Shown one piece after another: positions 2,733-53,460 of a stretch of 64,000 nucleotides of DNA. Each line of letters starts with the position of its first letter. The stretch's first letter is position 1. The position numbers and the translations under genes were made by a program. Below the pieces are notes generated by a model. That model was not told where the DNA came from, did no database searches, and was given only the letters and a program-made list of their open reading frames with translations. Source of the stretch: Octopus sinensis (Eukaryota); contig NW_021832380.1 of NCBI RefSeq assembly GCF_006345805.1, positions 62,001 through 126,000 of the forward strand, read 5' to 3'.

Positions 2733-5700
2733 TCAGACCACGTCCTTTAGAATGAATTTAGGGACAATATTCATAGCCGTCATCTCCTGACATAGCAATT
2801 TGAAGGCATAAGGCATCTGTACTCGAGCCATTTCTGACCCATCCCGACAATTCTGACACCTCGCAGTGACAAAGAAGGAATACCAATTGGGCATGCCCAT
2901 CACCCCACACTTGCCACAAATATCCACAACAAAGTTATCACTGGACGTAACCAACCGCTCATGGATAAGCTGACTGGCCCCATATGCAATGAGACAGTCC
3001 CTCTCCATCTCCCCTATCCGCAGTCCTCCCTGCCTATTCCTCCCCTCCGTCGGCTGTCTCGTCAGATTCACCACCGGCCCAGTCGACCGGGCGTGGATCT
3101 TGTCCCCCACCATGTGCTTCAACTTCTGATAGTACACCACTCCGTTATAGATCTGGCACTGCAGAGGATTCCTACACTCCCCCAACACGAATACCCTTCC
3201 ATCCCCGTGTACATTATGTCCTCCCCGATGTAGTTGAATCCGTGCTCTTCCAATATCTTCTGAGTCAACTCGCGTTTGTCTCCCTGGAAGACTGCCATGC
3301 CTCACCAACACAACCCGTCGAGTCCACAAATTGACCTCCCACCGCCGCGGCCTTCCCGGTGATGATTTCCAACATCTTCCCCACCGTCATCCTCGAGGGG
3401 AATCCGTGAGGGTTCATAATCTACCATAACCACCCCTCCTTACAATGTCGGGAATCACTCCCTACCATCTCACACCACCAACTACCGATTCCGTGAAGGG
3501 CAGATCTTCTGGGGAGACAATGTTGCCAATAACACTACAAATGACAGCACAGGACACCCCTTCTGTCCATGCCGACTACTGAACTTGTCCCCTATTTCCG
3601 GGATTCGGTTTATTCTGTACTTTACTTTCAATATCGTCTTATCTCGCTCATTACACGTCAACATGACTCGGTCTACATGACAATCGTCCACTCCCCGGTA
3701 ACTGCCCTTCATTATTTGGACAAACCTGAGGGTGATCACATTCCTCACTGACTCGTCCTGCATTCTCATCCTCTTCACAAACAGACTGTCACCCGTTTTC
3801 ACCAACGCCCCTACACTTACACTAATTTAACACCAATCTCCGCAATTCCGTCATTTCCTATGGCCTTGAACCGATCCTTCACCCGATTGTCGGTCTCGGA
3901 GATGACTGGAGGTGGCTGACCCTCTTCCACTGTGGAGAAATCAAAATATGCCACTTCCTTCCTGTAAACCGTGGACCTCCCCAATCCCCGGTCGATGGAT
4001 GCTTTATTGAAGACCAACGCATCCTCCAAGTCGTACCCCGAAAAGCTCATTATGGCCACCAGAGCATTCTGTCCTCCCGGAAGTCGATCAAAACAAGCCA
4101 TGTCCATCACTTTGGTGGAAACAAGGGGTCGTTGAGGGTAGTTCAAATTATAAATGACTGAATCAAATCGTTTATAGTGGTTTTCAGCCATCAGCCCTAC
4201 GAATAGAAGGACATTCCAACCCTGTGCTTGTTTGCCCATAGCACACTGATAGGTCAGTCGAGGTGCCTGGTTGTGATTGGAGAAAGGCACTACACTCACA
4301 CACACACCCAGTAGAGCAAAATTAGCAATATCCATGTGAGTAGAATGCCTATATTACTCCCCACACACAACTCGTTAATGCTCTCCCTGTCGGAAGCCAC
4401 CACTGCGTCCTCCATTTCGTTGGCGTCCAAAAACTCGAGGACTCCATGTCTCCACAGCCAATCCAGCGGCCTACCACTGACTGGGACTACTCACGTGGCT
4501 TTGTCGGCCAGTTCTTCCTCCAGTTGAGGCGTCAACAGACATTGCTGGTTGTCCACCCGGAAGAACGGGCTACCAATACACGGAAACACCCACCGAATGA
4601 GTCTCCCACCATCACAGGACACCACCACAAACCGACGGGTCTCATCCAAGTTAATATTCACGTAGAAATGAATAATCCCACGCCTTCTCAACTCGCGGAT
4701 ATTACTGACCAGTTGACTGGGGTTGGCCGATATCCCCACTACCCTCCCTGTCCGTAGTCACCCTCCAATACCGTTCAGAAACACAATATAATTGCAGGGG
4801 GCTGTCAGTTGGTCACCCGACACCAAATCCAACGGCAAAGTCCCGAAATTCCGCAGAGTGTCCGCGATCACGGATTCCGTGCATTCCCCCGACACCTCCG
4901 CCAACAGGGACAGGTTCTTGACGAGACCACAACTCTACCACACTCAAACTGACACTAACCTCCCCCTCGGGTGTGTCACATGGACAAATCAAATAAAACT
5001 GAGTTCCGTGAATTGACCGTGGTCCCACCGATTTCCGTGTTTTCTCAAACTATGGAATTGGGTAGGGAAGGGGACTTGTGAGACAATTCTGGTGATGTGG
5101 GTTATCGTGGCCAAATAACAGCACCGACTGAGTACTTGGGTCACTCCAGATCTGTCCATTTTGAATCTCTTGATGGCCCAATTGCCCTGAATAGTGAGGG
5201 GGAGTACAGTGAGGAGTGCCAATTCAAGTCTATCGGTGATGTATCGTGGACTGATGTAAGTGTACAAGTCATATCCCGCATGTTTGCACATCCGTTCGTG
5301 CACTCTTTTCAAGTCAGAGTTGAAAGTGAGGAATAAATCCTCGAATAAAAGTGAGAGAAGAGAGGAAGCCAATTCCATTCGTTTATTGCCGTAGTGTTCT
5401 CGACTGTCCATTGTCTCTGGTCTCAGCTTGGCCGAGATGTATCGGTAGATCATGACACAGAGGAATATCCCCTTTTCTCGCAAATCCCTCCCGTCGCACT
5501 ACTCAATGACCACCACACATACTTCTATGTTCGGGAGGAGCACATCCGCCAGAACTCGGCCTAGCAAGTCCTTCTTGCTCATTTCTCCAATTCCTTGTTC
5601 ATGTCCACTGATCCTCACTTTGTCCTCCAAGTACTCCAAACACTATATTTATTAAATAATATAATTAATTAATTATTAATTAATTTAAATATTGAAATAG

Positions 5701-6813
5701 TAGAATAATACAGAAGTGGTGATGTGGACACATGCCACCTCGTGACAGTGATAGAGGCTGGGAGTCAACATTGTATAATTGTCTGGGGTGTGACCAATGT
5801 AGTCGAAAATCTCCTGATCAGTCTCAATGCCCAGTGCCTTAATGAGGACATAGGCAGGCACCAACTAGGACTAATTCAATCACTTACATCATTAAATGAA
5901 TTGTGCTTTATATAGAACACATCCCTCTTCATTAATAATGTCGTCTTGCTCTTCCTTTGAGAGGTAGAACTGAGGACTGAGGCCGTCAACAATTCTCCCT
6001 CTCCCTCCACAATAATCCGATTTCTGTTCATTTGTTCTTGTATCATGAGGACACGTTCGGCCCCCTTTATGACAAAGTACCCCCCGGGGTCGAGGGGACA
6101 TTCTCCCACTCTGTGCAGTTGGTAGTCCCTTATTAGCTTGTTCACTGTCAGGTTGCAGTTTTTGGAATGAATCATTATTGGAAGTCTACAATATATATTA
6201 TATCAATAAATATATATTTTATTTCTATTGTTTATTAAATAAATTTTTATCAATAAAATATATTTAAAATTTGTATCGATGTGTGCTTACCTTCCAATTA
6301 GAACATTCTCCCTTCTGACATAATTATCAGGCTCCCCTCTCTGGTAGACAATGTCGACGTATATGTCGGCTGCGTATGTGAGATCCCTTAGGCGGCACTA
6401 CAATATGCCACTGAGGTACCTCGTTGGGGAACACTGCCCTGGTCGTCCCCACTCCCTCGCAGATGTCTGGCGTGCCCACCCGGATATTGTGATATCTGCT
6501 GGGTTATGTGGAAGTACTGAAGGAATAGTCGGCCGTCTGAAGTGAGGTAATGATCTTTATGGGCGTCCACGATTTCTTGGAGCTAAAATAGAGGGAAAAA
6601 TGTACATTTCTCGAAACGAAGGAGTTAAATGAATTGATCTGCATTTTTATTAATCCACCCTTGGCCAGGTAAAGAGGAATGAACCGTTCTCTCCCCTATT
6701 TAATATTTTTGATAGTTTTACCTTAAAGTTTCGTAGGTTTGTTTTGTGTGTGAAGAATATCTCGCTTGTGTCTGGACGTCTACGAATAAATCATTACCCA
6801 CAACATACTGCAT
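2733..6813 (-). CDS. POLR3B: DNA-directed RNA polymerase III second-largest subunit (RPC2), many tiny introns
   Basis: Motifs [138 protein letters not shown]. Frame breaks are resolved by 22-29 nt GT-AG introns (e.g. 2860-2883, 4197-4220). The start at 6813 is inferred. Confidence 0.92.
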
Positions 6814-12405: not shown

Positions 12406-13347
12406 ATGAATTCAAAATCAATTCTTATTTTAAAATGCATTCTAGGACTGGCAATGTTTACAATACTTATCATGAATTTCATCTCATACCAGAAAACGGT
12501 ATTGTTATACAAAAGTATTCAAAAGATTAACATCACTGAATCCCTCGAAGGGGAAAGCATGGTTTTAGTCACTGCCTACTACGTCATTGACCCCTTCAAG
12601 AAAGAAAAAGACGTTCTACGACTCTCATCTGATTATTTTCGGTGGATGGAAAAATTTAAATTTATATCGAATCATGTGGTGTTTTACTCAGACAGCATGC
12701 AAGTATTGAATAAAATGAAAACAATAAGAATGGGAAATCGAACATCAATTATCTTTTTGAATAGATCAGAATTAGTCGGATTTATGAACATTGACAGAAT
12801 CAAACACATTTTCACTCTCCCTGGATATGGCCAACACTTTCTCGAAACGGGCAACCCCGACTACTCGGCCATAATGCACTCCAAACATGACTTGCTCCGC
12901 AGAACCATTCACAAATATCAGAACATGTCCTCCTACTTTGTTTGGGTTGATGTGGGACTCTTCCGACACACCACTTTTGTGGGCAATCACGAACTGAGGG
13001 CTACACAGTACATGGATCAGACACGCGTCACGATGACTCAGATCTTTGGGTTCCACGATATTTCAATGGAGGAAATCACCAAGAATGCCCAAGTATGGGT
13101 TGGCGGGGGCATGTTTGGAGGACACTTCAAAACCTTACTCAAATTCTGCGACGTTTATAGCGAGTTTTTTGAAATTCTTTTGTCCATGAATTTGATTGCC
13201 ACTGACGAGCAAGCACTGTACTCGCTGTATTCCACTCAGGGACGGATTTTAAAGAACGACAGTGTCCCAATACAAGTCTATCAATGTGGGTATTTTGGAC
13301 TCTATTCGCTATTTACAGACGTGACCACCAATTTTGAATGTCCTTGA
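12406..13347 (+). CDS. HtrL/YibB (WlaTC/HtrL)-like putative glycosyltransferase, type II membrane protein, intronless, 313 aa
   Basis: Single long ORF with an N-terminal hydrophobic anchor (ILILKCILGLAMFTILIMNFI) and motifs VLVTAYY, YFRWM, DYSAIMHSK, YFVWVDVG.FR, VGGGMFGG and TDEQALY that I associate with the HtrL family. AATAAA follows just downstream. Confidence 0.68.
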   Translation: MNSKSILILKCILGLAMFTILIMNFISYQKTVLLYKSIQKINITESLEGESMVLVTAYYVIDPFKKEKDVLRLSSDYFRWMEKFKFISNHVVFYSDSMQVLNKMKTIRMGNRTSIIFLNRSELVGFMNIDRIKHIFTLPGYGQHFLETGNPDYSAIMHSKHDLLRRTIHKYQNMSSYFVWVDVGLFRHTTFVGNHELRATQYMDQTRVTMTQIFGFHDISMEEITKNAQVWVGGGMFGGHFKTLLKFCDVYSEFFEILLSMNLIATDEQALYSLYSTQGRILKNDSVPIQVYQCGYFGLYSLFTDVTTNFECP

Positions 13348-30131: not shown

Positions 30132-33100
30132 TTACAGGATGGTCACGGAGGGTGTCTGAACTGCATTGCCTTCCCTTCGTTGGGCGACCATATTGTTGAA
30201 TGCTTTAATTACTCGCAACTGCGACTGAATGCGCAATCCAGAACGAAGCCACAATATTTTGGCTGAGGGTATGTTTGCCGCGCTCTGACGGTCTTCCGTG
30301 ATCAACGTGATTTCGTCTTGTTGCATGCGTCCGACAGCAAGTCCTCTGGGCAGTTTTTTAGTAGGGATAAAAATCAGGAGTTGTTCCCAGAGTAGCCCCC
30401 CAATCCCGAATCCCAGACAAACCATCCAATCCACGAAGGGAAGTGGTCTCGTCTGGAAGAGAATCGAGCCAAACTGGACAATAATAACATGGACGACAAA
30501 TGTGGACCCCCAAATTGCCAGAAACATTGGATTTTTAAGAATGTTCTCAAACACGTTTCTTTCTCCATGAATTTTGCGACAATTGACTTGATTGAACAAA
30601 GTCATAATCACAAACACGTTGAAGATGGCAGTGTAGTCTTTGTAGGGGGATGGAGACGACAAAAAGTAGTTCTCTAAAAGTAAGGATTGACATCACTACC
30701 GAGGAAGAGGAACATAAAAATGACGATCAACTGGTAGACTGCATGTCCTACAATCGACTTCATCATATTCCGAGAGATCAGAGCTTTCGTCCGTCCGTAC
30801 GGGCGTCGTTTAAGCAATTTCTCCGTCGGTTTCTCGGTGGCCAGAGCAAGTGAGGCGAACGTGTCCATAATTAAATTAACCCACAGCATTTGAATGGCTG
30901 AGAGAGGACTATCCTACCAAGTCAGGAAATTAGACATGACCAGAGACACGGCAGATCCAATGAAGGCTACAACCACAGCGACCAGGTTGACTGTGAGTTG
31001 GAAGGTGAGGAACTTGGCGATGCTGTCATACACATTCCGTCCCCACATTACTGCCTTGACAATGCTTGTGAAGTTGTCGTCCGTCAGAATGATGTCGGAT
31101 GCTTGTTTAGCCACATCTGTGCCGGCCATTCCCTGCCCTGAGTCACTCCCAGAATACCATGGCGAACCCCACGTCTGCCTTTTTGAGAGCTGGGGCGTCG
31201 TTGGTGCCGTCGCCAGTCACTGCAACCACTTGCCGGTTGTTGGTGAGTTCGCTGTTGATTATTCCGTTAATAAGAGTGTATTTGTCCGTGGGGGAAGACC
31301 GGGCCAGCACTCTCAGTTGGGGCCAGATGGAGTCCAATAATTCTTGCTTGATCTGCGATGTCATGGGAGAAGACTGCCTTGTTGTTAGAGTCACGTATTC
31401 TGCGGTTGAACTCGCTGCTTTCGATGACCAGAGAATCGTCTCCCGAGATGATTATTCCACATTTGAGGGCAATAGATTTTGCAGTGTTCAAATTGTCCCC
31501 AGTTATCATTCTGACGACAATTCCAGCCTGTTTGACCTTTTCGATGGCCCCGGGGACCTCGTCCCTGATAGGGTCCTCAATTCCTGTAATGGCCAAAAAA
31601 GTCATTCCCCGCAACACCGAATCCTCGTCCTCCCAATTGGGCTCTCCTAAAAATGTAAAAGCCAACTCTACGACCTCGCTCTGTCGGAAAGTCCTTAAAT
31701 GCAAGACAGAGAGTGCGGAGGCCTGACGTGGACATGACGGCGATCACTGTGCGGTATATATTGTCTCTGCCTGTATTGGAGAGCGACCGGATGCCTCCAC
31801 CCTCCCCAAGGACATGGGAACATCTACTGTCTTAAAACTCCACTACCGAAGGAGAATAACTTCCGTGGCTCCTTTGCAGTACAGTCTAAACCCTTGGGGA
31901 GTCCTGACGACAGTAGACATGTACTTTCTGGTGGAATTGAAGGTGTAGAGCTTGTGGAAGGAGATGGTCGGGGTCTGTTCTCTGATTTCTGCGTAATCCA
32001 TGCCCAAAGTTTGTAACAGTCCGAGGAGGGCACATTCCGTCTTATTCCCCATCTGCTTAGGTCTCCCAGATGGGTCCTCCACTAGAACGGACGTATAGGC
32101 AGTGTTGACGGATATGGACTCAGAGAGGAGTTGGAGTGTGGTGGGAGGAATACTTTCGGCAGAAGGGACATATTTGAAATACTTATCTGCCATATTGACA
32201 GTGAGAATAAAACCAGCAATGAAGAGTTCGACGACAGTCATTCGATTAGTGGTGAGAGTCCCTGTTTTGTCCGAACAGATGGTTGTGGCACTCCCCATCG
32301 TTTCACAGGCGTTCAAATGTCGCACCAAGTTGTTGTCGTAAATCATTTTCTTGACAGAGTAAGCCAACGAGATTGTCACGGCCAAAGGCAGTCCCTCTGG
32401 AAGGGCCACCACAAGGACAGTTATCCCGGTTATGATATGTCCAAGCAGTACGTGGATGTGTTCTCCACTGTCCCATGACTTTTTCTCGGTCGCAAAAGTG
32501 TTGACCACAAACCTGAGTACGAGTGTCAGAGTAGTGAGAATAGCCATTGAGAGACCTTCATTGTGCAAATATGCAATACCGAAAATTCCGATTTTCAGTG
32601 TCAGTTTGGATAGTTTGCTTTGGAGGACAGACTGTTCAGTCGAAGTGTCCAAATGGTCCTCCTCCACTGGGAATAGTCACGTTAAACTATACAAAATTGC
32701 TCGGAAATTCCTTCCTGTTCTTCCTTGTCGACTGGAAAATAAATATACAAAAAAACCGATATTCTTAACTTTTTTCTTCTTTTTGTTATTTCCAACTGCT
32801 CCCAGGAGAGTGGCAATGATGCCCGACTGGGAATGGACCCCCACGGCGAGCACAATCATATTCCCACTCCCTTCCATCACTGTCGTTCCTGCAGAGATTA
32901 TGTGTTCCCTCGACCGGAATAGACGAGGGGATTATCCGTTTTATTTTTTTTGACAATATCAGATTCACCCGTAAGAGAACTCTCGTCCACTCGGAGGTCG
33001 TTTGAGTGGAGGATAAGTCCGTCCGTGGGGATAAGGTCCCCATATTTAAGGTGGCAGATATCCCCGACTACAATGTCCGACACATTCACGTTGATCAGTC

Positions 33101-39971: not shown

Positions 39972-41464
39972 TCAGTGATTAGAACATTGCGGAAGACTAT
40001 TCCGAGACACAAAGGCAACCCCCGCCAAGTTCATTCTGCAAACAGAACAGCGGAAACATTCAGTGTGCCACGTCTGTCCGCCCAACGCCTCCACTTGGAT
40101 GTACCTATCCCCCGGGTCAATCCTGAGGCGGCAGTCTGCACACGACTTGGCGTAGATATACTCCCAATCTGCTCTCGTCTCCAAAAAGAGTACCCTTCGT
40201 GCAGAATATTGAGTTTTCATAAAAGTGGAATCTCCCATCGGAAATTGTCTCATTGCAGTGACAGCAACGGAAGCACTGAGTGTGCCACCGCTTACCCAGG
40301 GCAGCTATAGACTCCTGGCATGAATCCCCACACTACCTCGACAATTCCTTCCCCACACTGTTCACAGCGAGGGGCGTAGTACTGCGCGTAGTGTTCCCGA
40401 CAGTACAATTTGTCTTGATGCACTGAGAATGCCGTGTCCACCAGGGATACTCCACAATTGGAGACCGCACACGTAAAGTGATCACGACAGTAAGTCTTCT
40501 CCAATGCAGTCACGTATGGTCCTCTAACTGTTAGCCATTCTGGGGTACCGAATCAGATTCTTGCAAACATCGCAAATGGGTGTTTTCGATGGCTTCTTTC
40601 CTTCCTCTTTGCTTAAACGTATCGCTGAAATTTGATCACACACATTCTGTGCCTCTGTCTTCTTGCTTGAGTCACCAGAAGAGGATTTTGCCGAACCGGA
40701 ACATAAATTAGCTGACCCAAAAGCAGGATTTGATGACCCAAATGACGGTTTTGATGACCCAGAAGAAGGCTTGGGTGACACATAAGGAACATTTGAATGC
40801 TCAGAGGAATCCTTGGGTGAAACATAAGGAACATAGGAAGTCTTGGGTGACACATAAGGAGCATTTGAAGGCCCAGAAGAAGTCTTGGGTGACACATAAG
40901 GAGCATTTGAAGGACCAGAAGAAGTCTTGGGTGACACATAAGGAGCATTTGAAGGACCAGAAGAAAGTTTGGGTGACACATAAGGAGTATTTGAAGGCCC
41001 AGAGGAAGTCTTGGGTGACCCAGAAAGTGTTTTGGGTGACTGAAAAAAGACGGGCGTTTTTGAGGTTGAAGGAATACGACGTTCAGTCTTTTAGCCATAT
41101 AATGAATATCTCACCGTTTCATGGTATTTGGTAGATTCTGGTGTTTTCGGGATGAATGTAGTGCCGGAAACCACAGGGGACTCTCGTGCTCTGAGGAACT
41201 TAGAACACTCAACAACCTGCTTATCTTTAAAGTTAAAGTCTCCTGTGATGAAGAAATAATGTTTCTTGCCTCGTCATGAGTCATATTTTGTGTATCGATA
41301 TTGTTGATGCTTTCGATGATGTCACCAGTGACAAGTCCACACACATTTGCGACTCCACTCGAAACGACGTTGATGACACTAATAGGATAGCCCTGTTCGT
41401 GTCCCCCGTGCATTCGAAAACCCCAAGGAATTGATTTATTAGTTCTGGTTAGTTCAATTATCAT
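39972..41464 (-). CDS. PDZ-LIM domain protein (ZASP/Enigma-like, N-terminal PDZ plus three C-terminal LIM domains)
   Basis: PWGFRMHGG PDZ loop. LIM motifs CDVCKNLI, HFTCAVSNCG..LYCREHYAQYYAPRCEQC, CADCRLRI..WHTECFRCSVC. A Ser/Pro repeat linker separates them. Confidence 0.86.
40700..41040. repeat. Coding minisatellite, 42-bp (and 21-bp) units within the PDZ-LIM linker
   Basis: TTGGGTGA starts at 40771, 40813, 40843, 40885, 40927, 40969, 41011 and 41032 (spacings 42, 30, 42, 42, 42, 42, 21). Encodes PSNAPYVSPKTSSG on the minus strand. Confidence 0.92.
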
Positions 41465-42928: not shown

Positions 42929-43478
42929 TATAATGTTAACGCATAAAAAGACTAATTAATTATTGAATATGAACTTTTGAAATGTTAAAAACACTCCTTT
43001 TCTTGAGCTTTCTAAACCTCTGAGATATTGCTCAAAAAAGGGGATCCTGACAAAGTAATTGCAGTTCACTTTGGGGTCACATTGGGGGTTTAATTAGCTG
43101 GTTTTGATTACTCAACAGTCTGACGGCGCAATCATTCAGGCAAGTTAAAAGCGAGTCAAGTGGCTGCATTTTCTTGAATAAAACATCGTCCTAAAGTGCT
43201 GAAAATAAAGAAAACTGACAAAGTAGTCCTAGTTTTTTTTGATACTGTCAGGCTCACTAGTCCAGGCTAGATTGAACTTGGACATTCAAAGCCACTGAAC
43301 TGCTTATATAGTGAACTGATCTGTCAATGAATAAAAAAAAATTTTGTAAATCACATAGAAGTAACGAGGATAAGATTATGTTATAAATATATAAATAATA
43401 CAAAGTTTTATAGATTAAAAAGAACGAATTGAGCTGAGTGTCGTAGAGTGGACTAAGTGACTAGTAAAGGAGGTGTCC

Positions 43479-46082
43479 ATGCCTGACAATTTCAAAAATA
43501 ACAAAAAAGGACGCTTCCTCGATCTAAATGAAGTGGCCAGTAACTACGTGGCCAAATATGGGAAATCAATGTTCTCCAACCGAATAAAAAGTGCCAGCTG
43601 CAGCGGGGAAGAGACCTGTCGTTCCAAAACAACTTCCCCCGTCCGAATATCCTCAAATTCCCCAGTCCAAGAATGGTTTCAAATGGCTACGACTGTTTCC
43701 ACCACTCCCCCGACTGCCCCAACTGACCAAGTGGGTGGATTGGACCAAGCAAACCCTCAAATAACCATGGACCAGCTCTACACATCCCTCACAGTCGAGG
43801 AGGATGACAAACCAGAAGACAAAATTGTGGCCATTTCTCCTACAGGCTCATTTGTCAAGTTTGCCTCCGAGTTGGGGTCGGGGTCCTTCAAGACGGTCTA
43901 CCGGGGACTGGACACGGAGACGGGGGCTGCGGTGGCGTGGTGTGAACTGAAGGTTGACCCCCCTGAGGACTTGATAGAACACTAAATTGGGCAAAATTGA
44001 CAGGAAGCGGTTCAAGGAGGAGATTGAGTTGTTGAAAGGACTTCACAACCCAAACATTGTGCGATTCTACGACTTTTGGGAGACCAAGACGACAAAGGGA
44101 ATTGAACTTATTTTGGTGACTGAATTGATGACTTCGGGGACCCTCAAAACGTAGATTGAGTTGTCGATTGTAGATATATCAAACGATTCAAAAAAGTAAA
44201 GCCTCGAGTGCTGAATCGGTGGTGTCTTCAAATATTGAAGGGACTCAACTTCCTCCACACACTCAAACAGCCCATAATTCACCGGGATTTGAAATGCGAC
44301 AACATTTTCATAACTGGCCCCACAGGGTCGGTCAAAATCGGGGACTTGGGACTGGCGACCTTCCGAGATGGGGCATTTGCCAAGAGTGTGATTGGTTGGT
44401 GGGGAAATGTCAGTTCAGGCACTCCCGAGTTTATGGCCCCCGAGATGTACGCGGAGTGCTACGATGAGGCAGTGGACATTTACGCCTTCGGAATGTGCAT
44501 GTTGGAGATGGTCACGTCTGAGTACCCCTACAACGAGTGTAATTCTGCTGCTAAAATATACATGAAAGTAACTGGGGTCAGTCTGGGTGTCGATTGGTAG
44601 GGAATTCCCCCGGAAAGTCTGAATAAAGTACATGATGACTCGCTTAAGAACATTCTGGCCAGTTGCATTGCCTACGACAAGAAGTATCGGTAATATTTTG
44701 GTGGCAGTGCAGATACACTGCTGATGAGTTGCTGAGGATGAACGTGTTCAGTGAGGATATGAGTTCCCTCAACGTGGATGTGATCGGGCCAGGGATGGAC
44801 GACAACGGGGACTCGATAACCCTCAGAATATCGGCTGCTGACCTGACCAAGTCATGTGATCTGCTCATTAAGGACAAAGTGGGAATCTACCTCAACTACA
44901 ACCTGAAGGAAGACACGGCTTTCTCAGTGGCTGAGGAAATGGTATTGTTTTGGGTGACCGCAGGCCAATTCCAAATTCATAAGCAGTGAGAACACGAGTG
45001 CCATTGCCAAACACATTCTCATCAATGTTCATAGATATGTCGAGGAGTCCAGGAAACAGCACGAGAAGGCAGTCGTGTCCTCAGATTTAGTCGAGTTGTT
45101 TTTGACTGTTCAATAAAGACCCGTGGAGAGTGAGGTGAGGGAGCAGACTGAGAGTATTCAGCCCAATGGGGAGGAATCAGTCGAGAACGAGAGGAGTATA
45201 TCCCTCGAATTGGTGGAGAAGACGAACAACGACATAAAAGTCAAGTTCACCAACACCAAGGGAGATGCAGTCACGTTTATATTTGACTGTGCCAAGGAGT
45301 CTATCCCCGACATAATTTCCAACTTGGTCCTCCCTTCTTCTCATTTTAGGCCGACGAGAAGTATTTGGCCGATCACGAGTCGGACCAATTAGTTGAATTG
45401 CTTGAGAAATTGGTGGATAAAGTGTCAATTACTGGCAATGTGAGTGAGATGTGTTTATTTGTTGGACCCCGATCACGAGTCGAATAACCGGATTGAGGAG
45501 GAGGACGTCTCGTGTGCGCATGGGGAATATGTGAGTGAGAAGGCCTCGTCGAGCAAGGAGGGTGCGCCAGTCAACACACACGACTCGCTTGTCTCTTGTT
45601 TAGATAAGACTGAAATAGGTTGTGTCCATTCTAACTCTCAAGAGTCCGCAACTCGGGAGAAGCCTCAGAACTCGTTGGCTCGATTGAAGGAAGAATTGAA
45701 CAAGACATTCAATCCTCCCGAGTTTGTGCCACCAAACTCCCAAAAGACTGACAAACATGAGGAGGAAGTGCACGTTCGAGACAACGATGTCATGTCTTGT
45801 CACTAATTTAAGGAGACACAGCGATTTGGACGATTTGACGTGTCCAACGTACCTTCCGAGTGCAGTGCCACAGAATTGTCTGTCCTCCCTCCCATGACGC
45901 CCCTCACCACAAGGGGTAGTGAAATGGAGCAGATTATTGCCAGGGAACATCAGGCAATGCTGGAAAGGTAGTCTAAACTTCTGCATCTTAGACACTCGGA
46001 AGAATTGGAGGGATTGAAGATTCGACACTCGCGAGAGACAAAACAGTTCTTTGAGCGTCATTCGAAATACAGACATGCATAA
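43479..46082 (+). CDS. WNK: WNK-family serine/threonine kinase, multi-exon
   Basis: GSGSFKTVY (catalytic Lys in subdomain I), [59 protein letters not shown]-terminal RFDV (RFxV) motif and coiled coil. Confidence 0.93.
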
Positions 46083-46118
46083 TCAGTGACTAATCAAATA
46101 TTTATTATCCAAAAACTG

Positions 46119-47518
46119 TTACTGCCCTCCCCTACTGGGAATATTAGACATATAACTAAGATGTTTACGATTAACTCAACCTCCGACTAGACTTCCAATC
46201 GGATCTAAATATTAGTTTACATACTCACCCTCGAAGTGAGCTATTCAAAGTCGCCGATCTAAACTATTAAATCCCCAATCACCCTCTCTCGGGAATACTG
46301 TTGCTATTTGTGAAGGAAGTGTCCGATCTATAATATTAAATGCCACTTCACCCTCTCTCGGGAATTCTAAAGGAAGTGTCCGATCTATAATATTAAATTC
46401 CAATTCACCCTCTCTCGGGAATTCTGAAGGAAGTGTCCGATCTATAATATCAAGTGCCCCCTCACCCTCGCATGGGAAAGTTCTTTCCAAATGAACTGCC
46501 GGAACTACAATAATACTGCAAAGTCACCCTCTGTCAGGGAAGGATGAGGCCGATCTACTATATTAATTATTAAACTACCCTCGCTGGGGAATATTTCACT
46601 CTTTGAGAAGGCCGAACTAGAATGTACATAGAGAACTCACCCTCTGACTGGCACACCCTCGTTCTTGGAGAAGGACGTGTCGTGTCTACACTCATGTCCC
46701 AACACTACCCTCTCCTTGGAATCAGTTCCTCCAAAGTCCGTGACTTTCCCCGTGCAAACACTGCATTGCTGTCCCCGTAGTACGCGTCCTTCGATATCTC
46801 GAATTGCTGTCCCCGCTTAAACTCCAATGTGCTGCCCTCAGACAACCCAACTAGTCATAACATTCCCTCACATACATCTGCTAGACGATTCTCGACCAAA
46901 CCCTTTCATTTTGGGCAGTTCGGGGGTGGCTGGAATGTCACACAACACTACCCTCAGGCTGAGAGAATCGGGCTGCTGCAAAATCAAGTTCCACCGCATC
47001 ATCGTCTTTGAATCTGCTCTTTGTCCGGTCTAAATAGTGAATTGATCGTACTTTTTGGTTCCTGCACCAACTCCTTCGAACAGGGGGCTGTGTTGTGAGG
47101 AGGGGGGCATACCACTCAAATCCATAAGGGAGATGGTCACAGATCGGTTGTGTAGGAGTTCTCCGTTTAATTGGAGGACTGAGATCAGGTCCTGTCTGGA
47201 TGTAAGCTCGACCTTCCCCATTCCATTCCAGGACTCGAAAAATGTGAATTTGATTCCACTAAACAGTTTCTTTAGGTCCTCTTCTGTGGAATTGAAAGGC
47301 AGGTTTTTGAGATGTGCGATGAAAGGGCCAGTCTGGGGGATTTTTTCTTCGTCTATTCCGTCGTGGTAGAACGAGCTCGGGGCGGAGGGGAGAACTACGT
47401 TTGGCTGTTTTACTTCTCCTCCAAACTCTTCGACTAAATCGTAAAATTGGATTGTTTTCTTGGCTTTATTTTTATGTCCTATTATGTTTATAAAAATTGA
47501 TTTATCACCACGTCCCAT
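46119..47518 (-). CDS. EIF4B: Eukaryotic translation initiation factor 4B-like, with a micro-exon-encoded C-terminal repeat region
   Basis: KNKAKKTI..F, VLPSAP..ID..KIPQTGPFIAHLKNLPFNSTEEDL.. RRM matches the eIF4B N-terminus. Spliced continuation through ten 23-25 nt introns to ..GSDWKSSRSYMSNIPSRGGQ*. Confidence 0.8.
46156..46735 (-). repeat. Tandem exon+intron array (core 57-bp unit = 33-nt exon + 24-nt intron)
   Basis: Minus-strand units GAGG|GT...AG|(A/T)TC recur ten times. Two adjacent units are nearly identical (ATCGGACACTTCCTT(C/T)AGAATTCCCGAGAGAGG). Confidence 0.88.
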
Positions 47519-49780: not shown

Positions 49781-49923
49781 GAAAATCCTTGAACTTTAAA
49801 ATCCCATATTGAATTTGGAAAATCCCACTTTGAATTTGGAAATCCCATATTGAATTTGGAAAATCCCACTTTGAACTTGGAAATCCTATATTGAATTTGG
49901 AAATTCCCATATTGAACTTGGAA
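49781..49923. repeat. Minisatellite of 20/21-bp units
   Basis: Six copies of AAATCCCA(TA/CT)TTGAA(T/C)TTGG(A), with alternating CATA and CACT variants. Confidence 0.9.
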
Positions 49924-49924
49924 A

Positions 49925-51390
49925 GGTATACATGTCTCTGAAGAAGACGTAAAAGATGGGATTCTCTCCTTCGTCCCGAGCAGCAGTGGTGGACTAGATG
50001 GGTTCCGTCCGGTCACCTCAAAGATCTCATTGCTCGTAACACGGGCAAATTTTTGGTCCGGCTCGTACTGGCTATCACCAAACTAATGAACAGGATGCTA
50101 TCAGGGACACTACCATAAACAATTCGACACGTAATGTTCTCCGTCAAATTAATCGGATTTGACAAGAAAGGAGGGGGAATACGCCCTATTGCTGTTTGCC
50201 TGGTTTTTCGTCGGTTGGCCTCAAAGCTTTTAGGCAGAGCAATCCTGCCTACGTTGATAACACAATTACAACCAGCCCAAATAAGGGTCGGCACACCGGG
50301 GGGATGTGAAGCGGCAGTTCATGCTGTACGAACATTCACCGAAAAGAACGAAAACACTCCTTTCGTAATCGTCAAAATTGACATTAAAAATGCCTTTAAC
50401 TCAATACAATTCTGGAGGATTGCTTCACATACTACCCATCAGTTTACAGCTATATTCATAGCTCATACGGAAAACCATCCAGTCTGGTGCACGGCCAATA
50501 TTACATCCCATCGTGTTCTGAAGTCCAACAAGGGGATCCACTGGGGCTTGGAAATTGCCCGTGTCACAAGATATTGTTCCACTTCCCTGAGGGTATGGTA
50601 TTTGGATGACTGCACCATGGGCGGTGAATGGGACTTGATATATTCAGATAGATCATTCCTAAAGCCACTAAAAACAAATCAGAACAATTAGAAATACTTG
50701 GATGCCCTCTTACTGATGCAGGAATCATTAACACTCTAATAATAAAAGAACATCAACTATGAACAACATTCAAACGTCGTGAGATGCTGGACGCACACAC
50801 TTCCATATTTCTGCTTCGGGGCGCACCCTGCTACCTGGAAATGCAACAGCTCGACGAAATTGATTGTCTCTTTCGGACCACCATTGAACATATCACCAAT
50901 GTGAAATTTGACGACCAAGGGTGGGACCAAGCGACCCTACCCGTTAACCTGGGGGGACTGGGAATTCCTTCACAGAAAGATCTAGCTTGCCCCGCATATC
51001 TATCCTATTTGGACTCCAGCCGACTACTGATCAGGAAATTCTCCAACTCCAAACTGAATCATCTAAAATCACAGACATGGAGCATTCGAGGGGGATGATG
51101 CCTGAGCAGAAAGACCGTTACAGGACCGTCTGCGAAGGTAAATATGAGAGGTGGGGCCACCGTCGATTGTTATGGACACCATGCCCTCTCTTGTAGAAGA
51201 AGTGCAGGACGATTTCAAAAATACAAGGCGATCAACAAAATTGTCAAGAGAGCCCTGAAGTCTGCAGGATACCCCATCGTTCTTAAACCTGTTGGCCTTG
51301 ACAGAGGAGATGGAAAACGTCCTGTGGTCGAGACAACTGGAGGAATAAGTAGGAAATTGCTTTGCTTCCTGAAGAAACTTGGACGCTTAA
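49925..51390 (+). mobile_element. CRE-clade retrotransposon remnant (RT, zinc finger, RLE)
   Basis: SSGGLDGFRP, KKGGGIRPIAVCLVFRRLASK, GTPGGCEAAVHA, KIDIKNAFNS, WYLDD, ATLPVNLGGLGI, VDCYGHHALSC, GLDRGDGKRP. Confidence 0.87.
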
Positions 51391-51539
51391 CCACATTAAA
51401 AAGCCTTCAAAGTGAACAAGGGGTGGTACTCCACACACTTCTTTCTTTTCTTCCTCCTATTTTCTGGCTCTGTAGACCTACGAGGTGGTGTAGTCCATCG
51501 CTGACTAAATTTCAGGACTGGGTTGGCGATTATCAAACG

Positions 51540-53460
51540 AGCATGATCATCAGGATCTCGGAAACCTTCCATGTTTTTGAGACATGACCCCATTTCAAAC
51601 TCGCCAAGAACAGTCACGCCAGGAACTTGTGTAGCTCCTCTGAGCCTTCCAGGCGCATAGGGAGCTTGTCTTGCCCAAGTGTGTTGTCTTTAGACGAACG
51701 GATAGTCCAGGTCACCTCTGTTGTGGTGATTGGGCAGTGTTTCGACGACAATGGGCACGACAGTGGCTTTGACATCGAGGATTGCGCCGTCCCTTGACAC
51801 TTTATGAAAACAGTCCCAGAAGCTTAGGTTTTGTGGTTAAGGTTTATACAAGCCTTCTCCCATTTTCTAGCGGCGTCCAGCTTTGTCCTGAAATTTATTT
51901 TTCCACTGATTTCAGTGGGCCAGTTATTTTTCATATTCTTGAGTGTGGCCCAGTCAGAGGAGTCCACAGAGCGTCTGAGTTTCTTTCTTAGACGCTTTCT
52001 CTCCGTCGATCTCGAGGACAGGGTCGTATCGGACACTGCTACTGTTGTCGCGTAGAAAGGCATTTAAGGAGCTTCTATAGTGTGGCCAGTTAATCTTCGA
52101 AAGAGAGAACCGAGTAAATTCGCGTTCTTACCTTTTAATACTGCGTGAATTTTGACCTCCATTGGTAGGTTGTCGCTCCCGATATCATCAAAAACTGTAG
52201 GCTCTTTCATAAGGTTGGCTATAGTGTACCTGCAGATACTTAAGCACAAGTTGTCCGTGCTGTTAGGCGAGTGGTGGTTCGGGAATTCAAAGGTTCTTAC
52301 AAATACACCGATTTTGTCAGTGACTTTCTTCAGTGTATGACCATCCTGGTTGTTCGTCCGACAGCCAAACACCGTGTGCTTTGAGTTTAGGTCTCCAACG
52401 AGAAGGCAGTGAGCTGTGCTTGAGAAAAAGTCATCAATCAAACTGGTGCTGGGGGAGAGGTTTTTGGAATATAAGCCTCCGACTTTTAGCCAGAAGGAAT
52501 CGGTTTTCACCTCAAGGGAATTCACGTGATTCCGTCTTTTGATAGATCGGGCATTCTCAGCGATGATTTTCAAGGGACTATGTTGTTGATGTGCTCCCTT
52601 CTAGCAGAAGCTGTTGGAGCATCTCCGTTTCTACACCGAGTTTTGTCAAGGCTCCTACACAACGGTGAAAGAATTCAATTAGGCCATCTCTGTTCTGCAC
52701 TTGGTTGCGGCAGTACTTTGTCTCGAAGAGTGTTTGCCTTCTTGCGGGGACACCCGAGCGGTTAACATTGGTGCTGGGACGATCGTCAGTATCTGACTTC
52801 CGGTTGATGTGGACAGCTGGGTCCGGCAATGTCTGAATCCACACATCGACTTTGGACGGACTCTGGGATGGTCTTTTGGTCCAGCCCGACTCAGTGCGTT
52901 TGGCTTTTGCCCAGCGAACGGGGCTTTAAGCCAGCGGGTTATTCGAAGTCCGTGAGGCTGCTGTTGCGGCTTTGGCAGATGGGGATCTACCGTAGCACGT
53001 CAGGTGCCCAGTGTTGTTACAATTAATGCAAGTTTTGCAGCTGGGAGATTGGGGAAAGGGTTTCGATTTCGGGCAGTTTTGGTGCCTGTGTTCGTCACCA
53101 AGAAGCAGAATCAAAATTTTTCCGTGCATCTGTGAGACGTATATACAAACTGGTTGCATCGGAAGCATCTTGGGGTCATTGGCTTGAGCCATTCACAACA
53201 GATATGACTAAAGCTGCAGTGATTCCAAAGTGGATGAGGAGCTGGCCTCGGCTCTAGAGTCCAGCGTAAGTTTTCCGACCTGAATGTCGACTCCATTGTG
53301 AGTGTACCTTTCGAACTTGAAGTTTGATTCAAGATGTTTCCGTAAGACGGGATTCTTTCAAACCGAAAAAGCACTTTGCCCGTGACGGCTTGACTGAATG
53401 ACATTTTTTCTTGCTGTTGAGCGCAGCTTTATTCTCGGAGTGAAAAGACGGAATCCAAAG
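51540..53460 (-). mobile_element. Jockey/I-group LINE: ORF1 zinc knuckles, APE endonuclease and start of RT; decayed and 3'-truncated
   Basis: ORF1 PRCFRCNQF..H..C and CINCNNTGH. APE LLVGDLNSKH..FG and SDNLPM (SDH-like). RT domain 0 PITTTEVTWTI..GQDK. Confidence 0.83.

Follow-up and report, generated by a model that had tools for sequence, protein, structure and literature searches.

The question raised by this locus is whether a short tandem repeat at the 3' end of a housekeeping gene is a series of micro-exons, each followed by its own tiny intron. The locus lies in a stretch of 64,000 nucleotides (nt) of contig NW_021832380.1 from the Octopus sinensis assembly GCF_006345805.1, hereafter the window, whose numbering is used throughout. 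The gene occupies 47518-46119 on the minus strand and resembles the translation factor eIF4B. It is probably an eIF4B orthologue with a tail made of tandem micro-exon and tiny-intron cassettes, in a likely dicyemid host with ultra-short spliceosomal introns. That the tail introns are spliced is very likely overall, a judgement that covers both an intact array and an array with a real frameshift in one 38-nt exon. As a whole the observation is probably real and represents a compact variant of tandem exon-intron duplication.

The array was read on the minus strand of 46119-46735, with introns 1-10 and micro-exons 1-9 numbered 5' to 3' on that strand (Table 1). The original prediction of ten GT-AG segments, all in phase 2 and nine of them at an Arg-Gly junction, was reproduced to the base, lengths included. 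The nine exons also have the predicted sizes (45, 38, 27, 39, 33, 33, 45, 30 and 24 nt), and the sole difference between the two 33-nt exons is TTC versus TTT, which is synonymous. Introns 1-9 each interrupt a GG/N glycine codon after an arginine. The ten introns are packed into 553 bp (46156-46708), and the cassettes measure 49-69 bp. Removal of all ten introns yields a repeat peptide that ends in GGQ-TAA, provided that the 38-nt exon is given one extra base. The tail is composed of 24% Ser, 11% Gly and 10% Arg.

The array is best read as the product of repeated tandem duplication of an exon plus intron cassette of approximately 57 bp. This part of the earlier proposal agrees with both the period found by Tandem Repeats Finder and an alignment of 11 units, which shows conserved exon ends, the GT, and an A/T-rich 3' part of the intron ending in TAG, all arranged head to tail. 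The end of the preceding 142-nt exon (...GATTCCAAGGAGAGG/GT) already bears the 3' signature of the unit. The founder would have been this ...IPRRG/GT end, and the duplicated cassette would have comprised the 3' part of an exon, the intron and the 5' part of the next exon, in the latest rounds three times. Identity among the three youngest copies is still 90%. No further copy of the unit as a dispersed element was found within the window. At 40524-41098 on the minus strand, a coding repeat has 6.7 tandem copies of a 42-bp unit (SSGPSNAPYVSPKT...); it is intron-free, with two overlapping open frames and no Pfam match. It provides a contrast in the same window, a coding minisatellite without intron-bearing units.

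Several features of the array point to functional introns. GT and AG are kept in all ten tail segments, even where the interiors have diverged beyond recognition. The variance in length is 0.32 for the tail introns (23-25 nt) versus 55 for the exons (24-45 nt). The larger indels (6-20 columns) of the 11-unit alignment are all mid-exon, and intron lengths vary by no more than 2 bases. Exon length is a multiple of three in eight of nine cases (P=9.7e-4, or P=2.6e-3 with the two youngest copies counted once). GC content is 0.32 in the introns versus 0.51 in the exons (P=9e-6). Pairwise comparison of the three youngest cassettes gives 2 differences in 95 exon positions and 12 in 72 intron positions (P=0.001), as would be predicted for constrained exons with freely evolving intron interiors.

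The splice sites and the reading frame agree with these patterns. A splice-site profile trained solely on 17 validated introns of the window gives the tail introns a mean score of 1.65; the validated introns themselves score 1.0 (leave-one-out), and the mean over all 2792 GT-N-AG candidates of the window is -3.7 +/- 3.65. Retention of any of the ten would bring an immediate in-frame stop, directly after the glycine for introns 1-9 and after RLS for intron 10. A stop-free spliced path as long as this one, with 23-25 nt GT-AG introns only, was found in 8-18 of 5000 dinucleotide shuffles; a permissive version that allowed introns of 22-28 nt is weak (49 of 2000 shuffles). Between 46800 and 45900 the minus strand has a single AATAAA/ATTAAA, at 46106-46101, after the stop of the Arg-Gly frame. 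A window-wide length histogram of GT-AG segments joining long open frames could not be told apart from dinucleotide controls and thus carried no information.

Such intron sizes are typical of the window. Two conserved genes, encoding PMCA and the RNA polymerase III subunit RPC2, contain 17 homology-validated introns, 22-28 nt long (median 23 nt). In a three-frame translation compared with solved structures, human PMCA2 residues 67-1108 are covered by seven blocks in collinear order; the frame changes six times between them, and a GT-AG segment (26, 23, 28, 22, 25 and 26 nt) spans each change. RPC2 shows the same frame switching. Removal of five segments of 23, 24, 23, 23 and 23 nt yields a 134-residue RPC2 peptide that aligns without gaps to yeast RPC2 906-1038 (E=9e-52). 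This gapless alignment also validates an 18-nt micro-exon (GVIPDI, 3444-3461, minus strand) between a 24-nt and a 23-nt intron, so this genome handles micro-exons shorter than those of the eIF4B tail. An outlier among the RPC2 introns is a very AT-rich GT-AG intron of 105 nt (6186-6290, minus strand). In PMCA, an in-frame tiny intron with a stop codon is present within 30909-30949 (minus strand); it is likeliest 27 nt long (30940-30914), its boundaries being ambiguous among four candidates.

The coding content of the window (cadherin repeats, a POU-homeodomain protein, LINE reverse transcriptase and endonuclease fragments, PMCA and RPC2) identifies it as animal DNA. Among animals, introns below 30 bp have been reported solely in dicyemids and myxobolid myxozoans (PMC13644364, PMC6543705, PMC6736024). 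Of the two, dicyemids are favoured because no named myxozoan protein is among the listed PMCA matches (most of which are unnamed) and because cadherin-repeat and POU genes are present. We consider a dicyemid the likely source. The median intron is 27 bp in Dicyema sp. (PMC6543705), and the genome of Dicyema japonicum has 36.7% GC, 49% repeats and many LINE-1 copies (PMC6736024). The introns described here share with those of dicyemids and myxobolids the GT-AG ends, the weak extra splice-site signal and the size, 22-28 nt compared with published medians of 22-27 bp (PMC13644364, PMC6543705). That literature, however, describes the genome-wide distribution of lengths rather than tandem arrays with one intron per repeat unit.

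The gene is eIF4B-like, as the original prediction held. Compared with solved structures, the spliced N-terminal half matches human eIF4B best (E=7e-11, also 2e-7 and 1e-6; eIF4H reaches 0.012), in an alignment that begins at the pre-RRM LPTAP motif and covers the RRM. Pfam RRM_1 is found in the open reading frame (ORF) 47518-47030 (22.4 bits). An exhaustive search of 1.84 billion representative proteins returned 180 homologues of the N-terminal/RRM ORF at E<=1e-3, many of them canonical eIF4Bs. The homologues inspected carry the hallmarks of eIF4B, namely a basic N-terminus with a KT.xL..FL motif, LPTAPK, the RRM, a DRYG-like repeat region and SIFGGAKPVDTAAREREIEERL. The pre-RRM motif (LPTAP...IP..PP[FY].A[FY]L.NLP[FY]) is present as VVLPSAPSS...IPQTGPFIAHLKNLPFN, which aligns with human residues 96-140 and with P0130, P0132 and P0135. 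For the N-terminal KT[ILV].L.[DE]FL motif, HKNKAKKTIQFYDLVEEFGG lines up with human KKNKKGKTISLTDFLAEDGG but scores -1.5 bits alone, and a few library matches extend N-terminally to query residues 9-14. When the full spliced protein was used in a protein search with a word pre-filter no match at E<=1e-3 was obtained; distant eIF4Bs appeared in the exhaustive search. The RRM is without approximately 9 residues of the human loop after the second strand, seen as an alignment gap, in a strongly reduced eIF4B (ORF 47030-47518, minus strand).

After the RRM no DRYG region could be aligned, and the tail is of low complexity but of a different composition. The predicted protein is thus best described as a divergent, short eIF4B of about 345 residues, in which everything after the RRM would be lineage-specific. 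The earlier suggestion that the tail replaces the DRYG region is unsupported: the tail has no detectable homology and the C-terminal SIFGGAKPVDT motif is undetectable, so neither offers a reference point for placing the tail relative to a DRYG region.

Connecting the tail to the RRM exon would require at least three further tiny introns. Five minimal paths exist, all of which reach the 142-nt exon ...ELIPRRG. The intron at 46951-46930 is also used by most of the four-intron stop-free paths shown between the RRM exon and the tail. The 3' boundary of the RRM exon is ambiguous (47113 or 47082). Splicing of the segment 47479..47508 is not required because it holds no stop codon. Under a codon-usage model trained on 1944 validated codons of the window, the 142-nt exon scores +6.8 in the ELIPRRG frame and negative in the other two frames.

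Several points weigh against an intact, spliced eIF4B tail. The units are mutual duplicates, and the tests against chance given above are not fully independent. Transcript, protein and related-genome look-ups returned nothing, so tail splicing is inferred rather than observed; scans of metagenome and genome contigs for the junction of exons 5 and 6, spliced or unspliced, gave no match. Several splice paths are possible from the RRM to the 142-nt exon, which leaves this part of the gene model ambiguous. No homologue of the tail was detectable by protein search or by comparison with solved structures. A profile of the C-terminal SIFGGAKPVDT(A)ARERE motif built from 61 homologues finds nothing in the spliced protein; the SIFGGAKPVDT motif is carried by 62 among the 150 listed homologues. 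Finally, in the assembled sequence the 38-nt exon throws the reading frame out, so that the spliced message would read ...EDRTLPSEFPRE... and stop at TGA 46247-45. The number of conserved codons free of such breaks, given below, belongs to the same side. Among the candidates rejected, a by-eye match of 'NAVFARGKSRTLEEL' to SIFGGAKPVDT is unsupported by the profile search, and a single antibody match of the tail among solved structures (E=0.22) is due to chance. Look-up of the exact product of the genomic ORF and an Rfam scan of the window gave no match.

The frame break bears directly on how the tail is interpreted. As originally noted, the 38-nt exon requires one extra base for the Arg-Gly frame. 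Alignment with unit 1 places the deficit in or near an A-run at 46594-46596. Inspection of the sequence revealed no alternative GT-AG donors or acceptors that would make this exon a multiple of three. The sole stop-free route as assembled reads through the AT-rich introns 3 and 4 and excises exon 3 as a 28-nt 'intron', which is contrived and biologically unlikely. Codon usage in exons 3-7 scores +3.6 bits in the Arg-Gly frame versus -14.8 as assembled (+2.5 versus -12.7 with duplicates counted once). Because codon usage downstream of the break favours the Arg-Gly frame, this is the frame on which selection has acted, a result that fits an assembly or allele artefact and a recent real mutation alike.

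The explanation offered earlier for this break, an assembly error, stands as a possibility, since the site is both a repeat and a homopolymer, but it is unproven. About 2100 conserved codons of PMCA and RPC2 show no unexplained frameshift in this assembly, so that an error may not simply be assumed. The assembly of D. japonicum is a hybrid that includes PacBio RS II data, and the heterozygosity of the sample is 1.24% (PMC6736024). If the window is from D. japonicum, a local indel error or a minor allele in a repeat is therefore plausible. On balance an artefact or minor allele is somewhat favoured over a real mutation.

The alternative that survives best is that the array is spliced and the missing base is genuine, the tail being in the course of shrinkage or decay rather than intact. 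Either the frame would be shifted, through ...EDRTLPSEFPRE..., and the message would probably be a target of decay, or the 38-nt exon would be dead and skipped within an 86-nt intron. The break is present in the sequence and has no clean GT-AG repair, and the conserved codons of the two validated genes speak for its authenticity. Skipping of this exon would preserve the frame since the introns on both sides have phase 2, and the window does have longer introns, such as that of 105 nt in RPC2. Against a genuine loss stand the preference of downstream codon usage for the Arg-Gly frame by about 15-18 bits, the openness of that frame up to a stop located 13 nt before the sole AATAAA, the intact splice sites on both sides of the 38-nt exon and, should the source be D. 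japonicum, the properties of its assembly. We regard this reading as possible but less probable than that of an intact array.

A second alternative is the regulated skipping of frame-symmetric units to generate many tail isoforms. The original prediction held that any subset of the exons could be skipped. In terms of frame this is correct: with phase 2 common to all nine Arg-Gly introns, a glycine codon (GG/A or GG/T) is restored whichever donor and acceptor of introns 1-9 are joined. Actual use of this capacity is unsupported. The skipping of one exon would need an intron of at least 74 nt, and the validated introns here are overwhelmingly 22-28 nt. If, as assumed here, introns this small are defined by recognition across the intron, the common alternative outcome would be retention and not skipping, and a retained intron truncates this protein at once. 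Combinatorial skipping consequently appears improbable.

The weakest alternative is that nothing is spliced, so that the protein stops at ...ELIPRRG (TAG 46706-46704) and 46119-46705 is 3' untranslated region (UTR) or an intergenic minisatellite with incidental GT...AG; the TAG does directly follow the 142-nt exon in frame, the region is a tandem repeat, and approximately 13 GT-N-AG candidates of 22-28 nt are expected by chance on one strand in 617 nt (from 2792 in 128 kb), but a neutral minisatellite would not limit larger indels to one half-unit and keep eight of nine such halves multiples of three, fix the other half at 23-25 nt, the validated local intron length, preserve GT and AG in otherwise diverged units, or leave exon-like parts better conserved than intron-like parts, and the first AATAAA comes past the distal stop codon, all of which makes this reading very improbable.

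With splicing as the preferred reading, every copy of the cassette would contribute one S-x-(S/T)-S-F...(I/F/V)-P-x-R-G repeat and one intron. The tail would comprise approximately 115 residues in about ten repeats, each encoded by its own micro-exon of 24-45 nt, and would be lineage-specific, Ser/Gly/Arg-rich and presumably disordered. The introns would be removed singly and presumably recognised across the intron. Because introns 1-9 are in phase 2 and start with G/GTGA or G/GTAG, a failure of splicing would end the protein directly after an Arg-Gly, or the message would be marked for decay. We infer that the tail plausibly contributes to binding of RNA, the 40S subunit or a partner, by analogy with the yeast 7-repeats and the mammalian DRYG and arginine-rich regions.

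Repeat regions C-terminal to the RRM are known from other eIF4Bs. In yeast Tif3 the 7-repeats domain (approximately 26 residues, seven copies) binds single-stranded RNA and the 40S subunit, and the DRYG region of mammalian eIF4B mediates self-association and eIF3 binding (PMC8762332, PMC11464913). The tail described here is likewise made of lineage-specific, short, imperfect repeats that are charged and Gly/Ser-rich. It differs in that no sequence similarity is detectable and that its unit has 9-15 residues, is Ser-rich and ends in Pro-x-Arg-Gly. With it, there would be three independent examples of lineage-specific repeats following the eIF4B RRM. This fits the idea that the region after the RRM needs a repeat-like, disordered character and not a specific sequence.

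Arrays of small exons have classic representatives in the fibrillar collagen genes, with their 54-bp exons. Genes are also known to duplicate exon-intron units in tandem and to gain introns through tandem genomic duplication (PMC3443670 for review; cases in PMC3265369, PMC4974935). The eIF4B array shares with these duplications a unit made of exon plus intron, a uniform phase, exons in multiples of three and a protein with a short repeated motif. Relative to the exons, the introns of those earlier examples exceed the present ones in length by factors of tens to thousands. Here, since the intron is only approximately 24 nt, the cassette of 49-69 bp has the size of a minisatellite unit. The micro-exon genes (MEGs) of schistosomes similarly contain runs of very short frame-symmetric exons that are skippable in principle (10.1101/2023.06.21.545858). 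MEGs, however, have introns of up to 5 kb, secreted products at the parasite interface and described alternative splicing, whereas the present array has predicted introns of 23-25 nt and belongs to an RRM-bearing cytoplasmic translation factor.

The unusual feature is the scale, a cassette of 49-69 bp present about ten times in a housekeeping translation factor. We found no earlier description of an intron-bearing cassette of minisatellite size in a literature search that was not exhaustive. If confirmed by RNA, the array would illustrate with unusual clarity, and in compact form, how introns multiply through tandem duplication, and would show that near the size floor of spliceosomal introns an exon plus intron pair can evolve with minisatellite dynamics. 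It would also offer a stringent natural substrate for the recognition of 23-25 nt introns and 24-45 nt exons, ten back to back. Gene predictors and aligners with a default minimum intron length would cut the gene at the stop after ...IPRRG.

A broader and more tentative proposal is that in genomes with introns of approximately 24 nt the exon plus intron cassette behaves as a minisatellite unit that expands and contracts by slippage or unequal exchange, of which the eIF4B tail may be a live example. Under this scenario functional introns would multiply and vanish as part of a coding tandem repeat. The number of cassettes should then vary among individuals and species. Retention of single introns should produce a graded series of tails, each of them ending in Arg-Gly.

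Table 1. Features of the eIF4B-like gene and its tail array, listed 5' to 3' on the minus strand; the youngest part of the array is given last.
Feature	Position	Strand	Basis or remark
Proposed ATG start codon, eIF4B-like gene	47516..47518	-	first ATG of the ORF with N-terminal basic motif and RRM
Possible in-frame GT-AG intron, 30 nt, uncertain	47479..47508	-	AT-rich; removal gives MGRGHKNKAKKTIQF; stop-free
Exon with eIF4B N-terminal motif, pre-RRM motif and RRM	47113..47478	-	human eIF4B residues 96-227 align, E=7e-11
RRM domain, residues 61-117 of spliced protein	47138..47308	-	Pfam RRM_1 22.4 bits, cut-off 20.7
GT-AG intron, 22 nt, upstream of array	46930..46951	-	in first and third of five minimal three-intron stop-free paths
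GT-AG intron, 25 nt, upstream of array	46851..46875	-	in all five minimal three-intron stop-free paths
Exon, 142 nt, ending ...ELIPRRG; last ~17 nt resemble 3' end of repeat unit ('unit 0')	46709..46850	-	11-unit alignment
Tail intron 1, 23 nt, phase 2	46686..46708	-	GTAG...TAG; retention gives G-stop
Micro-exon 1, 45 nt (HDTSFSKNEGVPVRG)	46641..46685	-	spliced translation
Tail intron 2, 24 nt, phase 2	46617..46640	-	GTGA...TAG; retention gives G-stop
Micro-exon 2, 38 nt; sole exon not a multiple of three	46579..46616	-	frame break
Tail intron 3, 24 nt, phase 2	46555..46578	-	GT-AG
Micro-exon 3, 27 nt (SASSFPDRG)	46528..46554	-	spliced translation
Tail intron 4, 23 nt, phase 2	46505..46527	-	GT-AG
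Micro-exon 4, 39 nt (SGSSFGKNFPMRG)	46466..46504	-	spliced translation
Tail intron 5, 24 nt, phase 2	46442..46465	-	GT-AG
Micro-exon 5, 33 nt (SDTSFRIPERG)	46409..46441	-	spliced translation
Tail intron 6, 24 nt, phase 2	46385..46408	-	GT-AG
Micro-exon 6, 33 nt; one base off exon 5 (TTT for TTC), synonymous in Arg-Gly frame	46352..46384	-	
Tail intron 7, 24 nt, phase 2	46328..46351	-	GT-AG
Micro-exon 7, 45 nt (SDTSFTNSNSIPERG); exon 5 plus net 12-nt insertion in the middle	46283..46327	-	
Tail intron 8, 24 nt, phase 2	46259..46282	-	GT-AG
Micro-exon 8, 30 nt (SATLNSSLRG); contains shifted-frame stop TGA 46245-46247	46229..46258	-	
Tail intron 9, 24 nt, phase 2	46205..46228	-	GT-AG
Micro-exon 9, 24 nt (SDWKSSRS)	46181..46204	-	spliced translation
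Tail intron 10, 25 nt, phase 2, splits AG/T	46156..46180	-	GTTG...TAG; retention gives RLS-stop
Last coding exon (YMSNIPSRGGQ), stop TAA 46119-46121	46119..46155	-	
AATAAA polyadenylation-signal consensus, 13 nt past TAA stop	46101..46106	-	consensus match
Youngest part of array: 57-bp period, 2.8 copies, 90% identical	46311..46469	-	Tandem Repeats Finder

The array has a convergent neighbour. A kinase gene at 43473-46082 on the plus strand terminates some 40 nt short of the eIF4B stop codon; its catalytic motifs look WNK-like. No plus-strand open frame crosses the array region. Plus-strand ATTAAA occurs at 46266, 46335, 46392 and 46569, inside four of the eIF4B tail introns, so that the 3' UTR of the kinase gene may extend antisense across the array.

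Elsewhere in the window, LINE-type fragments are found in 49789-52573, with a reverse transcriptase at 50134-50691 (plus strand) and an endonuclease at 52064-52573 (minus strand). A 21/41-bp tandem repeat at 49789-49924 adjoins these fragments. At 12406-13347 on the plus strand, an intron-free ORF of 313 residues matches Pfam HtrL_YibB (E=2.5e-7), a family described as bacterial and unexpected in an animal genome.

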